Virus record (IMG/VR): IMGVR_UViG_3300027985_001318
Coordinates: 62,001-126,000 of that record
Reading direction: 5' to 3' (one strand)
DNA: 64,000 bases
Shown here: piece by piece, positions 35,927-62,783 of the stretch
How the letters are laid out: every line of letters starts with the position of its first letter
How positions within the stretch are numbered: position 1 is the first letter of the stretch
Translations under genes and position numbers: made by a program
The notes under the pieces: model-generated
Database searches by the model: none
Told to the model about the DNA's origin: nothing
What the model saw: only the letters and a program-made list of their open reading frames with translations

Positions 35927-36367
35927 TTAGTCCCTTTCTTTTTTTGTTAAAAACCAAACCCAGGTCTCAAGATCATCGCCTAGGTATTTCTCTATTAACG
36001 CCTCAACTTCATTAAAAGGCAGCCCGCCTTTCCCGCAGCCAATCGCTGGGATAGCTAAGCTCTCTATTTTTTTATCACGACAGTAAGCTGCTAGTTTCTT
36101 CAAATTGTTTTCTAGATACTCTACTTTAGAGCCCAGATAGAATTCTTTTTTTGTTGGAAAACAAACCACTTCGTCACAGACCAGTATCTGATCGACAGTA
36201 AATTGTTTGGCTAAACAGAGTTTACGATAATGTTCGTAAACTTTAGGATATTTCCATTTGAAAGCTAAAGCCAGCCCATTACCCATAACTCCCAAGGTAT
36301 TCACCGGACAAACCTTTAACTCCACGTCCGTAGTAAAGATATTTCCTCCACCTTTGTATACAATCAA
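35927..36367 (-). CDS. macrodomain ADP-ribosyl hydrolase (DarG/TARG1-like)
   Basis: GNIF, PVNT.GVMG.GLA..FK..YP, FPTK, LAIPAIGCG.GGL. Confidence 0.88.
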   Translation of the reverse strand: MIVYKGGGNIFTTDVELKVCPVNTLGVMGNGLALAFKWKYPKVYEHYRKLCLAKQFTVDQILVCDEVVCFPTKKEFYLGSKVEYLENNLKKLAAYCRDKKIESLAIPAIGCGKGGLPFNEVEALIEKYLGDDLETWVWFLTKKERD

Positions 36368-36378
36368 AGCTATCTCCT

Positions 36379-36404
36379 AAAAAGAGGAGGGCTTTCGCCC
36401 TCCT
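36379..36404 (-). terminator. intrinsic terminator
   Basis: AGGAGGGC/GCCCTCCT with U tract on the minus strand. Confidence 0.7.
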
Positions 36405-36855
36405 ATGTACTTTTGCCCTCTAATCCGCGACGGATGTTATCGGCAATAGCACCTCTCTTCTCGGCAATATCCATAGCGATAATGAACCACTCATTAACAA
36501 GCCATTTAGGGTTATAGAGTAGATCATCAAAACTTATAGAAAGCTCTTTGAAGGTAGGGGCGTATTTGGCATAACGTTTCTGTAGGTTAAAGATCGGATG
36601 GTTACCCAACACCGATTCCCTTGGCTTAGCCATAATGGGAGCCAAAGGATGGTCTGAATTGATATTACCGTAAAGACCATAGGTTTCGCGATAAGCGTCA
36701 TCCAACACCTGACGCGCCGTGGTGTTGGTAAGACCACCAGGGACTTTTTCTAGCTTCTCTAGTACGTCCTTGATCTCTATCCCTCTACCAAAGGAAGACG
36801 AACTTATATGCCGGCCCCTTCCCTCATCTTCGTTAGGCGAAGAGAGGTCAGTGTA
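36403..36855 (-). CDS. tail-chaperone 'T'-like reading frame, probably reached by -1 frameshift
   Basis: Frame of track ORF 36403..36708 stays open up to the slippery site; no ATG or clear RBS at its start. Confidence 0.6.
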   Translation of the reverse strand, partial: YTDLSSPNEDEGRGRHISSSSFGRGIEIKDVLEKLEKVPGGLTNTTARQVLDDAYRETYGLYGNINSDHPLAPIMAKPRESVLGNHPIFNLQKRYAKYAPTFKELSISFDDLLYNPKWLVNEWFIIAMDIAEKRGAIADNIRRGLEGKST

Positions 36856-38399
36856 AAAAAAACTCCGGCCGGATCCAGAGCTATCAGGTGGTCAAAACGA
36901 CCGCCTATTACCGGTTGTTTACCGTCGTAACCAGCAGCTACGCAGGAAGGACAGACGAAGTTAGGTACAGCGACCACGCCAATCGTGCAGTCGGAGATAA
37001 AAGCCTCGACTTTATCGTAGAAGTCCTTGGCGATATTTTCATCGTTAGTGAAAACACCGAGCTGATTAGCCAGATCTTCCCGATCTTCGATGTAGCCATT
37101 TTCATCGCCGTTCTCGTCCAAGAAGACAATCCGCTCAATCCAGTGGGAGTACTGCCGCATTGCGGTAGCTTGTCCTTGACTGAGGATATACTCTTCCCGT
37201 TCTTCAGGAGACATTTTCTTTTGGAAAGCCATCTCGCAACGCTGACGAATTTCCTCGACCCAAGCAATCCCTTCATTTTCGTATTGGGCGAAACTGGGGA
37301 TACGGAGATCGAAACGAATGCCGTTAGAAACGAAAGAACGGTTACCTTTCAAAGCAAATGCTTCGTGATACTCCTTGTAGATCTCAGGAGTTACCGGCGT
37401 GCCGGGGCGAGAAATGATCGAACGTTGCTTGCTGGTAAGATAACTCTTATCCATCCAAAGCATTTCGTTGATGTTAACCAACCCTTCAAAGGTAGCCATA
37501 CAGTTACCCGGCCGAGACAGGCAGGGTTGAGTGTAGAGGAAACCCTTGGGGTAGATAGCGGCAGCTACTTCAGTGAGAATCAAGTTTACATCAGGTAGCT
37601 TGATGTATTCCTTCAACAAGGCCTTGTCGGTGTAGTCGGCAACCAAATTACTACCGATAACAAAGTCCAAAATGAAGTTCATCGCTGCTGATTTGATGAA
37701 AACATCGGTAGAGGAAAACACTCGACCGGCGGTAGCGCGACCCAAGACAGACTTCATCAGAGCCATTGAAGCTTCCAGATTAATCAGATCTGCATTCAAC
37801 GGCTGTTTGATAGTCAGAGAGAAACCACTATGAATACCAGTGGCAGTAACTGGGGAACCGATGCCTAGAACGGCGGATGCCTTGGCCATGGCCTTAACAC
37901 CAGTCAAAGGCATGTTACCGGAACTACCCTCGATACGAGGTCTGGTCAGACCGATGCGACGACCTTCGTCAGAGAAGTTATTAGTCCATTCGGAACCTTC
38001 TCGGTTGAAAGGAAGGTCCGCACCTTTCTGACCAAACAGATCAGCACCCATTTCCAGAATTTCCGGCCATTTAGTTTTAAGCAGCGCAGCCAGCTCTTCC
38101 TTAGAAGATTTCTCGAGGATCTCACGGAACGGACCATTGATGGTTTCTTGATTGCCGCCAGGTACGATCAAGTGCTCCGCATCGCCGATGGGTTGTTCTT
38201 TAGGGATCTTGCAGTCCTCAGCTATTTTACCAGCCGGCAAAATAGACAGAGAAAATCCAGGATCGTCTTCTTCCCCAGATTCGGCATTGCTGTCCTGGTC
38301 CGGTTGTTCTTCGGTAGCCAGCCCCTGACTATCTACCACCGGTTCTTGATGTTCGATCTCGGCACCTTCTGGTTCTTGCTTGTCGGTTTCGTTAGACAT
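36804..38399 (-). CDS. gp77-like protein, putative tail/baseplate assembly chaperone
   Basis: Acidic N-terminus; C..C-type Zn motifs (QPC...C, CPSC); near-terminal VFF; synteny. Confidence 0.65.
   Translation of the reverse strand: MSNETDKQEPEGAEIEHQEPVVDSQGLATEEQPDQDSNAESGEEDDPGFSLSILPAGKIAEDCKIPKEQPIGDAEHLIVPGGNQETINGPFREILEKSSKEELAALLKTKWPEILEMGADLFGQKGADLPFNREGSEWTNNFSDEGRRIGLTRPRIEGSSGNMPLTGVKAMAKASAVLGIGSPVTATGIHSGFSLTIKQPLNADLINLEASMALMKSVLGRATAGRVFSSTDVFIKSAAMNFILDFVIGSNLVADYTDKALLKEYIKLPDVNLILTEVAAAIYPKGFLYTQPCLSRPGNCMATFEGLVNINEMLWMDKSYLTSKQRSIISRPGTPVTPEIYKEYHEAFALKGNRSFVSNGIRFDLRIPSFAQYENEGIAWVEEIRQRCEMAFQKKMSPEEREEYILSQGQATAMRQYSHWIERIVFLDENGDENGYIEDREDLANQLGVFTNDENIAKDFYDKVEAFISDCTIGVVAVPNFVCPSCVAAGYDGKQPVIGGRFDHLIALDPAGVFFTLTSLRLTKMREGAGI
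36822..36863 (-). promoter_or_regulatory. putative -1 ribosomal frameshift signal
   Basis: GTT TTT TTT, 7-nt spacer, hairpin CCTCTCTTCG-CCTAA-CGAAGA(T)GAGG. Confidence 0.6.
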
Positions 38400-38814
38400 T
38401 TACAAATCCTTGTTGAGGTTGAGGTTGATTGATGGCAGCCTGGATAGAAGAAACGATAGGCAGCGCATGTTCGGTCCAACGAGCGATCAGTCCCTGGTAA
38501 GACATACCGAGCTCCAGGGCTTTTACAGTGCGATCAGCACCATTGATATGATCGTTCGTATCACGAACCTGTAGTTCCAAGACATCGATCTCTTTCTTGA
38601 AAGCCTGGACCTGTTCGTTCAATACACCCAGGTTATTGAGCAGAATCTGCCGATCGCACTGCCCTCCAGCACGAACGAAATCAAGAGCCAACTTAGCGAT
38701 ATGAATACCGGCATTATGAAGTTTTACGACTTCTTGATGGAAGAGAACGACTTCTTGGATCGGATCCTGACGCTGAGGTCGATAAGGGTGACGAGGTGCG
38801 CTTGAAACAGGCAT
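38392..38814 (-). CDS. hypothetical coiled-coil protein
   Basis: Coupled to the gp77-like gene. Confidence 0.7.
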   Translation of the reverse strand: MPVSSAPRHPYRPQRQDPIQEVVLFHQEVVKLHNAGIHIAKLALDFVRAGGQCDRQILLNNLGVLNEQVQAFKKEIDVLELQVRDTNDHINGADRTVKALELGMSYQGLIARWTEHALPIVSSIQAAINQPQPQQGFVNV

Positions 38815-61247: not shown

Positions 61248-62783
61248 ATGCCTTTCACAACACTCGGATTGCAGGAAAGCTATCAGGCGATAACCCGCCC
61301 TGTAGTTAAAGAAATCATCGCACACATCCTTCAACTCACTAACTTACCGGCAGATACACCAATCTTTCACGTAGGGTCTTCAAACACAGCAGCCTTAGAA
61401 AACTCTACCATGGAAGAAAGTTTAGACCAAGTTCGGTTTTCTCAGAAGCAGAAGATTTTTATCCAGGTTTCTGAAAAAGCAAGCGAACAAACTGAACTTA
61501 CCATGCAGTCTACTAAGCCAGAAGGCCCGCCGGTATTCTTCGATCAGCCAAGAGGTGTGGTAATTCGACCGATCTACAGTCCTACCACAGTCACTATTTC
61601 AGTTAAGTTTCGCGCTAACGACCAAGTAGCTGCCGAAAGCTGGCGCAACGGTTTGCGTCGTAAGATTGCCGAAGACCTGATGGCCGTTAGTCACGAGATC
61701 CAATACCAGTACCTGATCCCTAATTGCTGCATTGGACTTTTACACGAAATATATACCCTGAAAGAAACCATCGATCCTGACAACGAAAAGCTTTCCGAAT
61801 GGTTTAAACGCTGCTGGACTAACGGAGCCACCACCGTTACCAAGATGGATACCAAACATCCGCGTATCGGCGTCAACGAACTCCAGACCGATGTGATAGG
61901 GTTCTTCGATTTCACTAGCCCGCCTGAGCACGACAAACACGAAGAAGGTTCTGCTTGGGAGATCTCGTTCGACTACGAGGTTCGTTTTGATAAGCCAACG
62001 GCACTGCAAGTAGTTTACCCAGTGATTGTCCACCAGCAGCTGCTGGATGAAAAATGGTTTCATCTGGAGACCAGTTACAAACCGTGGTTGCGGCCCGATA
62101 ATAGCTCTTTTAGTCGCAGAGCTTTTGATGGGGTAATTAACCAGACCAAACCTATCCCAGCAGAAGTTTTTGGCGGACTCCAGTACCCCAAATACGATGA
62201 CTGGTATCCGCCCATGAAACAGATGGCTACCAACACCATCCTTCGGGTTCTATGTAGCATCGCTGAAACAGATCGTACCTATATCGAGAAATTCGACGGT
62301 TTCGGTTTGTACGACATAAACCCAAGGTTTTTGGCCTTCATGCAGAAACACTATCGCTATCTGTTTAAGAAGGAAGAATCGCCATTTGTTCTTGAGCTTT
62401 GGGATGGCACGGATCGGATTGATCCATCGCAGATCGAAGTTAACGAGGAACTTGAGATCCGTACCAAATTCGAGCTCTCTCTACGGAATACTTACCACCT
62501 ACGTTTCTGTGCACTGATGGATCTTAGTTTGCTCTCAGATGCAGCTACGATGCGTTTCAGAACCGAAGGTCAGGCTTGTATTGAATTCCTGCAAGCTATT
62601 TGCCCTAACTTAGAGAACGTCGGTCTCGTACCGACTCTGACCAGCAACGGTATGGTTAGATCAGAAGAGTATTGGGCAGCTGTACGTTATATAGCGACCA
62701 CAAACCGCATGTATCGATCTAAGTACGAAGTGGTGCGTGCTAGAGCCAGTGGATTTGTCATCGAGGCCGATCAGTTGGAGTAA
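61248..62783 (+). CDS. virion structural protein (gp98-like)
   Basis: ATG 61248 after GAGGT (track start crosses a terminator); RPV, P.Y, YP..VHQQ, P.YDDW. Confidence 0.65.
   Translation: MPFTTLGLQESYQAITRPVVKEIIAHILQLTNLPADTPIFHVGSSNTAALENSTMEESLDQVRFSQKQKIFIQVSEKASEQTELTMQSTKPEGPPVFFDQPRGVVIRPIYSPTTVTISVKFRANDQVAAESWRNGLRRKIAEDLMAVSHEIQYQYLIPNCCIGLLHEIYTLKETIDPDNEKLSEWFKRCWTNGATTVTKMDTKHPRIGVNELQTDVIGFFDFTSPPEHDKHEEGSAWEISFDYEVRFDKPTALQVVYPVIVHQQLLDEKWFHLETSYKPWLRPDNSSFSRRAFDGVINQTKPIPAEVFGGLQYPKYDDWYPPMKQMATNTILRVLCSIAETDRTYIEKFDGFGLYDINPRFLAFMQKHYRYLFKKEESPFVLELWDGTDRIDPSQIEVNEELEIRTKFELSLRNTYHLRFCALMDLSLLSDAATMRFRTEGQACIEFLQAICPNLENVGLVPTLTSNGMVRSEEYWAAVRYIATTNRMYRSKYEVVRARASGFVIEADQLE

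Follow-up and report, generated by a model that had tools for sequence, protein, structure and literature searches.

A conserved candidate -1 frameshift site in the phiKZ gp77 family, a core gene of nucleus-forming jumbo phages

Does a run of T's near the 3' end of a core gene of nucleus-forming jumbo phages cause ribosomes to slip back one base, so that one gene yields both a short and a long protein? We examined this question in a 64,000-nt stretch of viral DNA (hereafter, the window; positions 62,001 to 126,000 of IMG/VR record IMGVR_UViG_3300027985_001318), where an initial annotation, made from the sequence alone, had proposed a programmed -1 frameshift producing a chaperone pair of the lambda G/GT type. 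On the minus strand, the ORF 38399..36804 encodes 531 aa, and was identified as a homologue of phiKZ gp77 by tblastn hits in 224 jumbo-phage records and a match to PHROG 4585 (E = 1e-91), although no near-identical DNA was found in GenBank phages. This gene corresponds to Chimalliviridae core gene cg18 (Goslar gp081, phiKZ gp077, RAY gp267), which is listed as "hypothetical". Near its end, the codons GGA GTT TTT TTT ACA create a T8 run at 36862-36855 (V513 F514 F515), including the heptamer T_TTT_TTT at 36861-36855, and the second Phe (F515) is followed by 16 more codons and then a TAA at 36806-36804. The -1 frame is closed by a TGA at 36894-36892, 31 nt before the heptamer, and is then open (FFYTDLSSPNEDEGRGRHISS...) to a TAG at 36405-36403, running through a separately listed ORF (36403..36708) that has only a GTG start and no SD-like sequence. 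A -1 slip at the heptamer would therefore yield a fusion of 515 + 150 = 665 aa, with the predicted junction ...PAGVFFYTDLSS... in the window and ...STFFYFGGLEVK... in phiKZ. Thus, the sequence features described in the initial annotation are all present, including a 10-pair hairpin downstream of the run.

If the T run is a recoding signal, it should be retained in relatives beyond what the encoded protein requires, a test that had also been suggested by the initial annotation. Among 45 loci checked, all 25 lineages below 50% identity carry a T5-T8 run at the same FF position, 11-39 codons before the 0-frame stop. These include phiKZ, SL2, PhiPA3, Goslar, RAY, SPN3US, Eowyn, RP31, Moabite, Vibrio and Aeromonas phages, and the Bacillus phage AgentSmith. 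In each case, the -1 frame is open for 152-180 codons downstream of the site and closed 3-54 codons upstream, while the +1 frame usually closes within 20 codons. The run is the only one of T6 or longer in the window ORF and in each other ORF checked. For the 23 lineages with T6 or longer, the joint probability of such runs at the FF dipeptide, based on their own Phe codon usage, is about 10^-18.6, and phages that otherwise use TTC over TTT at ratios of 14:0, 16:1, or 19:2 still use TTT here. In contrast, T4 gp26, which has the homologous C-terminal CPxC...FF motif but no extension, encodes FF as TTC TTT. In the window's own clade, only 10% of alignment columns vary in the 30 nt from the run, compared with 31-49% upstream. 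The dual-coding overlap lies at 36804..36854, where the 0 frame encodes the TLTSLRLTKMREGAGI tail of the short form and the -1 frame encodes the YTDLSSPNEDEGRGRH start of a linker.

Could the split between the two frames instead be an artifact? Homopolymers are error-prone and the window comes from a metagenome assembly, so the true gene might be a single 665-aa ORF, or might switch between states through changes in tract length. However, the same split occurs in about 45 independently sequenced loci, including reference genomes, and the length of the run is stable within clades (for example, T8 in the window and in the related loci L042, L043, and L044). Moreover, of the 1721 representatives of the family at 50% clustering, the top 150 all end within 21 residues of the end of the profile, and none is an in-frame fusion. 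Of 152 family sequences examined, 150 have F[FL] near the C-terminus, and the two exceptions carry T5 with the same -1 architecture. We therefore regard a sequencing or assembly error, or a phase-variable tract, as highly improbable.

We next asked whether the -1 frame downstream of the run encodes a selected protein sequence. The extension (36406..36861, minus strand) spans 152 codons counting the two Phe codons, or 150 new residues, and matches PHROG 12109 (E = 1.5e-10). In an alignment of 33 extensions, protein homology in the -1 frame begins at the slip site. The extension consists of a linker carrying an H-[IV]-x4-F-G motif (RHISSSSFG in the window), followed by a conserved helical domain (AYRETYGL ... 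HPLAPI ... LSISFDDLL-x-NP ...), for which the AF2 model is confident over residues 90-150. The linker, which lies between the 0-frame stop and this conserved domain, is under purifying selection in the -1 frame, with dN/dS of 0.11-0.46 in unsaturated pairs, and two closer pairs show 4 and 5 synonymous changes against 0 nonsynonymous changes. A terminator-like stem-loop at 36375..36404 on the minus strand (AGGAGGGC GAAA GCCCTCCT), followed by CTTTTT, overlaps the stop codon of the extension by two bases, and would end the transcription unit only after the extension.

A conserved downstream reading frame could also be explained by a second gene, translated by independent initiation or by termination-reinitiation, with the T run merely reflecting a conserved Phe-Phe motif. 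Database annotators do call a separate small gene in most genomes, and the FF motif is ancient, as it is also present in T4 gp26. In a few lineages a start codon lies near the 0-frame stop (RP31 has an ATG at +16 that overlaps it) or upstream of the site (RAY has an ATG at -26 in the -1 frame), and independent initiation may add to expression there. Yet the annotated starts fall at very different places and usually lack an SD, and conserved coding sequence under purifying selection, including the H[IV]xxxxFG motif, lies upstream of most of them. No ATG, GTG, or TTG exists in the -1 frame before codon +87 in phiKZ and SL2, or before +89 in AgentSmith, which covers half of the conserved domain, and none before +52 to +54 in two other lineages. 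Together with the codon usage at the run and its absence from T4 gp26, these data make two separate genes very unlikely.

In order to identify elements that might stimulate slippage, we examined the RNA structure around the site. The hairpin at 36847-36822, 7 nt after the run, has 10 pairs with one bulge. It folds at -24.3 kcal/mol for 71 nt, with z = -2.6 against dinucleotide shuffles, although a 70-nt window compared with mononucleotide shuffles gave z = -1.4. This hairpin is a possible local stimulator but is not conserved in the family: other lineages show no consistent downstream structure, and the changes in the two closest relatives (L042 and L043) are disruptive rather than compensatory. 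A single-sequence word-indexed protein search returned only 3 hits, but these provided two relatives at 65-68% identity. Upstream of the site, SD-like 4-mers occur in 5/25 lineages against a background of 0.21, and are thus not enriched. A terminator scan reported an 8-pair stem followed directly by the T run (36882-36855, minus strand), raising the possibility of an intrinsic terminator or pause site inside the gene. However, the upstream stem is not conserved (mean z of -0.44 over 27 loci, and +0.9 and +1.1 in the two closest relatives), and termination there would give an mRNA without a stop codon and leave the conserved downstream coding sequence unexpressed. We consider this reading very unlikely. 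As no conserved stimulator was found, the efficiency of frameshifting may be low.

The T run could promote a -1 shift in at least two ways. First, the ribosome could slip during translation. Second, the phage or host RNA polymerase could stutter on the run and add one U, or drop two, in a fraction of mRNAs, giving the same products. Polymerase slippage is consistent with the pure homopolymer, the T7-T8 runs in 14 of the 25 lineages, the lack of a conserved ribosomal stimulator, and the unusual multisubunit RNA polymerases of these phages, which are encoded in the window. On the other hand, nine lineages have only T6 and two only T5, shorter than the runs of about 7-9 or more that support efficient polymerase slippage in known cases. 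In addition, in every lineage a 0-frame Phe (or Leu) codon in the run is preceded by T, so its tRNA can re-pair with UUU after a -1 slip, as ribosomal slippage requires. The sites in relatives read T_TTT_TTT/C/A, A/G_TTT_TTT, or T_TTT_A, and those with imperfect P-site re-pairing (A_TTT_TTT, G_TTT_TTT) or only T5 require single-tRNA slippage. Transcriptional slippage is therefore possible but unlikely.

We favor, with high confidence, a programmed -1 recoding site. In this model, most ribosomes would read GTT TTT TTT ACA in frame and stop 16 codons later, giving the 531-aa protein, while a fraction would slip back one base as tRNA-Phe sits on the U run, where it can re-pair perfectly with UUU in the -1 frame. 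These ribosomes would then read TAC ACT GAC ... for 150 more codons, giving a 665-aa isoform in which a flexible linker and conserved helical domain replace the short C-terminal helix. The slip site and its conservation, the open and selected -1 frame, the lack of independent start codons, and the absence of fused genes are established by our analysis. By comparison, production of the trans-frame protein is predicted from sequence alone, and we infer that the slip is ribosomal rather than made by the polymerase, that the two forms occur in some ratio, and that the protein functions as a non-virion assembly factor for the baseplate hub. The interpretation in the initial annotation is thus partly supported: its core inference of a programmed -1 frameshift with 531-aa and ~665-aa products is strongly supported, and extends across the whole gp77/cg18 family, whereas its downstream hairpin is not conserved, and its reading of the extension and its assignment to the G/GT family are not supported.

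What might the two proteins do? The initial annotation had noted a resemblance between the end of the extension (SISFDDLLYNPKWLV) and the T domains of tail chaperones or T4 gp51. However, hhalign of the extension profile against gp51 gave a probability of 0.1%, Foldseek of the extension model found only jumbo-phage orthologues, Pfam searches found nothing, and a profile search of the PDB gave only chance hits. A search of the ESM Atlas with the extension gave a weak LPD38 lead with 137 shared features, below the level that can be used. Mention of gp26/gp51 may nevertheless be apt for the body of the protein, which is predicted by AF2 (pTM 0.69) to have a folded core at residues 130-531. Foldseek of this model against BFVD matched T4-like 'baseplate hub assembly protein/chaperone' models of 250-285 aa at E = 4e-5 to 5e-3, with TM about 0.52 over the target, and ESM Atlas structural neighbours carry PF12322 (T4_baseplate), one with TM 0.61 by query. 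T4 gp26 and gp51 both belong to this family, scoring 216 and 178 bits. This functional lead rests on remote similarity between predicted folds only. No PF12322 hit was found for the window protein or for 13 relatives even at E up to 10, and Pfam searches with both pieces and 14 relatives gave nothing meaningful. Foldseek of the body against the PDB gave nothing below E = 0.38, and no PDB chain matched its profile by sequence. hhalign against gp26 and gp51 gave only a 15-32 column CPxC match at probability 10-11% (for gp26, 10% over 15 columns). As indirect evidence on location, Goslar gp81 and gp82 are not mentioned in the Goslar virion structure paper.

Comparison with characterized systems places the candidate site in context. 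In the lambda G/GT tail assembly chaperones, and the conserved tail-gene frameshift of long-tailed phages (Xu, Hendrix and Duda 2004), a -1 frameshift near the 3' end of a morphogenesis gene yields a short and a C-terminally extended protein that share an N-terminus; the arrangement is conserved even where sequence similarity is lost, and the extension ORF has no proper start. The gp77 family is inferred from sequence to share this arrangement, but membership in the G/GT family fails on gene size, position, and homology. The gene encodes 531 aa rather than about 100-150 aa, and its slip site is a U run rather than G GGA AAG. Instead of lying between the tail tube and tape-measure genes, it is neighboured by a gp78-like ORF, a gp79-like ORF, a beta-type subunit of the virion RNA polymerase, a Macro-domain gene, and a helicase, with the same synteny in relatives. 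Tail assembly chaperone models appeared in the Foldseek search only at E > 0.5 and probability 0.3 or less. The G/GT label therefore holds only as an analogy. Phage P2 E/E+E' (Christie et al. 2002) is a myovirus morphogenesis gene with a -1 shift on a run of T's (T TTT TTG), but P2 E is small, sits next to the tape-measure gene T, and belongs to a different protein family. The E. coli dnaX tau/gamma frameshift also uses a homopolymer-like heptamer (A AAA AAG) to produce two isoforms in a set ratio, but with an upstream SD and a downstream hairpin, and its shifted product is the shorter one, whereas here no conserved SD or hairpin was found and the shifted product is the longer one. Finally, the 531-aa protein shares a C-terminal A-x-P-x-x-C-P-x-C ... 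F-F motif with T4 gp26 but is more than twice as long. T4 makes gp26 and gp51 as paralogous proteins from two genes and has no extension ORF, and T4 gene 26 makes its second product (26') by internal in-frame initiation rather than by frameshifting.

If the protein is indeed a hub assembly factor, the pair would work like the fixed-ratio two-isoform chaperones lambda G/GT and P2 E/E+E'. A more speculative extension of this idea, which we consider doubtful on present evidence, is that gp77/cg18 is the jumbo-phage counterpart of the G/GT principle, applied to a gp26/gp51-type baseplate-hub assembly factor. A fixed ratio of a short form and a long form carrying an extra binding domain would be needed to build the hub and tail core of these giant tails. 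T4, long noted as lacking the conserved tail frameshift, would reach the same end with two paralogous genes, gp26, and gp51 with its longer C-terminus. If so, the two-isoform chaperone logic would apply to long-tailed phages generally, and the roles of gp26 and gp51, still unclear after decades, would become directly testable.

While -1 frameshifts yielding two isoforms are established in other phages, we found no prior description of this one in the database records and papers searched, and literature searches on frameshifting, gp77, or the baseplate hub in phiKZ, SPN3US, Chimalliviridae, and jumbo or nucleus-forming phages returned nothing relevant. Although these phages are intensively studied, the roughly 150-residue extension is mis-annotated in every record we examined: in phiKZ, about 218 nt are left as intergenic and only an 80-aa fragment (PHIKZ076.4) is called, while other genomes call small genes with arbitrary starts. 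Recognizing the frameshift corrects the annotation of hundreds of genomes, adds a conserved domain to the core proteome, and affects how knock-down, transposon, and proteomic screens of this region should be read. It also provides a natural U-run frameshift signal that seems to work without a conserved stimulator in hosts from Pseudomonas to Bacillus, and offers a handle on the function of the poorly understood gp26/gp51 class of baseplate-hub assembly proteins.

We first re-examined the sequence on which the initial annotation had proposed a programmed -1 frameshift. On the minus strand, ORF 38399..36804 encodes 531 aa, and near its end it reads GGA GTT TTT TTT ACA, giving a T8 run at 36862-36855 with the heptamer T_TTT_TTT at 36861-36855. 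The 0 frame ends 16 codons after the second Phe. The -1 frame contains a TGA at 36894-36892 and is then open through the run (FFYTDLSSPNEDEGRGRHISS...) to the TAG at 36405-36403, including the listed ORF 36403..36708, which starts with GTG and has no SD-like sequence. A shift after F515 would give a predicted product of 515 + 150 = 665 aa. The downstream hairpin at 36847-36822 is also real, with 10 pairs, one bulge and z = -2.6. Thus, the observation was confirmed, and the coordinates reported for it are all correct.

The window is part of a 223,650-bp IMG/VR contig and has no close DNA relative among GenBank phages, but the 531-aa protein finds 224 jumbo-phage records at 20-31% identity, including phiKZ-like phages, PhiPA3, Goslar, RAY and SPN3US. 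In the core-genome table of Prichard et al. 2023 it corresponds to cg18 (Goslar gp081, phiKZ gp077, RAY gp267), which is listed as "hypothetical protein" and is not marked as unique to chimallin phages. The neighbors in the window fit the same gene block: a gp78-like ORF, a gp79-like ORF, an RNA polymerase beta-type subunit, a Macro-domain gene downstream, and a helicase. The gp78-like ORF (38392..38814, minus strand) overlaps the start of the gp77-like gene by 8 nt (38392-38399), which suggests translational coupling. The Macro-domain gene (35927-36367, minus strand; PF01661, E = 1.4e-11) lies directly downstream, and the same synteny is seen in Goslar (gp083), in a close relative of the window (locus L042) and in a metagenomic lineage (locus L048). 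Between the gp77 unit and this next minus-strand gene, a strong GC-rich stem-loop at 36375-36404 (AGGAGGGC-GAAA-GCCCTCCT), flanked by T runs on both strands, overlaps the stop codon of the extension by two bases and looks like a bidirectional intrinsic terminator.

To ask whether the site is conserved, we collected 45 loci carrying the gene from GenBank phages, IMG/VR contigs, and ENA and JGI metagenome contigs, which fall into 25 lineages below 50% identity. Every locus has a run of T's at the homologous Phe-Phe position, 11-39 codons before the 0-frame stop; the run is T8, T7 or T6 in 23 lineages and T5 in two. Wherever the locus reaches that far, the -1 frame is open for 152-180 codons after the run and closed 3-54 codons before it, whereas the +1 frame usually closes within 20 codons. 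In the 0 frame the sites read NNT TTT TTT, NNT TTT TTC or NNT TTT TTA, with two clades reading ACA/GTG TTT TTT and the T5 lineages reading NTT TTT ATY. In each case a 0-frame codon in the run is preceded by T, so its tRNA can re-pair with UUU after a -1 slip. phiKZ itself has ACT TTT TTT ACT. The 200-kb Bacillus phage vB_BspM_AgentSmith (locus L031, 2918-3416) has the same gene, a T_TTT_TTA site (the same heptamer as HIV-1 gag-pol) and a 166-codon -1 extension.

A conserved Phe-Phe dipeptide could in principle account for such runs. However, taking the FF dipeptide as given, the chance of a T6+ run, computed from each lineage's own TTT/TTC usage and third-position T frequency, is 0.01-0.70 per lineage, and the joint value over the 23 T6+ lineages is 10^-18.6. 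Lineages that otherwise use TTC almost exclusively (TTT:TTC of 0:14, 1:16, 2:19, 2:16 and 3:19) still have TTT here, and the run is the only T6+ run in each of the 23 ORFs. T4 gp26 (locus L046, 2803-3429, minus strand) provides a useful contrast. It ends ...CPECGKTHAHVIRGLKEFFELL, with a CPEC...EFFELL arrangement that matches the CPxC...FFTL C-terminus of the jumbo-phage family, yet it has no extension ORF, gene 25 follows at once, and FF is encoded as TTC TTT. The conserved ACCCT after the run in many lineages is what dual coding predicts, namely Thr-Leu in the 0 frame and Tyr-Pro in the -1 frame. Thus, the site is not explained by protein coding.

Several lines of comparative evidence indicate that the -1 frame is translated from the slip site, rather than from an independent start in the downstream ORF. 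In a tblastn search, the window's extension aligns from its first residue in Eowyn-type phages, across what is annotated there as the end of gene 1, an intergenic gap and a small gene. An alignment of 33 distinct extensions shows a variable linker with a conserved H-[IV]-x4-F-G motif 20-40 residues after the site, then a conserved domain (AYxxxYGI ... PL..V..ED ... F/L-S-x-x-E/D-F-L-x-x-P), and finally a charged tail. The motif, and often half of the domain, lie upstream of the annotated start codons. In pairs that are not saturated, the linker between the 0-frame stop and the domain has dN/dS of 0.11-0.46 in the -1 frame, and two closer pairs show 4 and 5 synonymous changes and no nonsynonymous ones. 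No ATG, GTG or TTG is present in the -1 frame for the first 87 codons in phiKZ and SL2, for 89 codons in AgentSmith, or for 52-54 codons in two metagenomic lineages, and SD-like sequences are rare. Reference annotations at this locus are inconsistent. The phiKZ RefSeq record (NC_004629; locus L045, 1881-2341) calls only PHIKZ076.4 (80 aa), the last 80 codons and the C-terminal half of the extension, leaving a 218-nt "intergenic" gap after PHIKZ077. SL2 (locus L029, 2680-3140) calls a 45-aa fragment after a 323-nt gap, and RAY gp266 (locus L002, 3571-4119) is started at an ATG inside gp267, 26 codons upstream of the slip site.

A profile search of 1.84 billion cluster representatives found 1721 family members, and all of the best 150 end within 21 residues of the profile end, so none of these is an in-frame fusion. 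Of 152 family sequences examined, 150 have F-F or F-L 1-34 residues from the C-terminus, with a median of 14. The two exceptions (V-F-I and L-F-I) are metagenomic lineages with only a T5 run, GTT TTT ATC (locus L047, 3055-3063) and CTT TTT ATT (locus L048, 2992-3000), which nevertheless keep the full -1 architecture, including an open frame that encodes the same xISxxxFG motif. Both forms therefore seem to be needed. Run length is stable within clades, for example T8 in the window and its three closest relatives at 63-68% protein identity, which rules out sequencing error and argues against DNA-level phase variation.

The most economical reading is -1 ribosomal slippage of tRNA-Phe on the U run. 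In this view, slippage would be tandem where the heptamer is T_TTT_TTN, and would involve the P site alone where it is A/G_TTT_TTT or T_TTT_A; the T5 lineages imply that a single tRNA-Phe slip on U_UUU may be enough. We looked for stimulatory elements and found none that is conserved: downstream folding is inconsistent, upstream folding has a mean z of -0.44, and SD-like 4-mers occur at background frequency. In the window's own clade, the 30 nt from the run, which include the 5' arm of the hairpin, vary in only 10% of columns, against 31-49% upstream, but the differences in the 3' arm break pairs rather than compensate. Thus, a conserved hairpin is not supported, and although the window's hairpin may help locally, this is unproven. 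Alternatively, the RNA polymerase could slip on the run, which cannot be excluded for the T7-T8 lineages but is a poor fit for the T5-T6 ones. An 8-pair stem directly before the T8 run (36861-36882, minus strand) also makes the site look like an intrinsic terminator in a pattern scan, but this stem is not conserved in relatives, not even in the two closest.

What might the protein do? The AF2 model of the 531-aa protein (pTM 0.69) shows an acidic N-terminus predicted to be disordered (residues 1-126) and a folded core at 130-531. The body has no PDB match by fold, and neither the body nor the extension has a meaningful one by sequence. Against predicted viral structures, the model matches its orthologues first, and then 250-285-aa models named "baseplate hub assembly protein, T4-like", "hub assembly chaperone" and "baseplate hub subunit", at E = 4e-5 to 5e-3 with TM about 0.52 over the target. 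ESM Atlas neighbors include clusters that carry PF12322. T4 gp26 and gp51 both match this family and so are paralogues, gp51 having about 48 extra C-terminal residues. Two GenBank records already call the orthologue a gp26-like hub assembly protein. However, the protein fails the HMM-level test for the family, and hhalign finds only the CPxC motif. We therefore treat kinship with gp26/gp51 as a well-founded lead, and not as membership. Four cysteines (C293, C300, C483 and C486; CPxC plus two upstream) are invariant in at least 90% of 14 aligned relatives, which suggests a zinc-binding site, and T4 gp26 has CTCG and CPEC at comparable relative positions. The extension model is helical, is confident for residues 90-150, and matches only jumbo-phage orthologues. 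The resemblance of the extension to tail-chaperone T domains or T4 gp51, proposed in the initial annotation, was not supported and we reject it.

The arrangement works like lambda G/GT and P2 E/E+E', in which a morphogenesis protein is made in two C-terminal versions by a conserved -1 shift. Yet it is not a member of those families, since it fails on size, position and homology, and membership in the G/GT type proposed in the initial annotation is rejected. The earlier interpretation is thus upheld only in part: its frameshift is strongly supported, while its family assignment is not. The sequence features and their conservation are shown by our comparisons, and on this comparative evidence recoding at the site is strongly supported and held with high confidence. 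That the shift is ribosomal is likely, though somewhat less certain, while the two predicted products and the analogy to chaperones, which is plausible, are inferred. We found no description of this site in the searchable literature, and none of the GenBank records that we inspected has a joined CDS at this gene. Recoding of this kind is already known; what is new is its occurrence in a core gene of a much-studied phage family, where the feature, given its presence in a Bacillus phage, spans Gram-positive and Gram-negative hosts.
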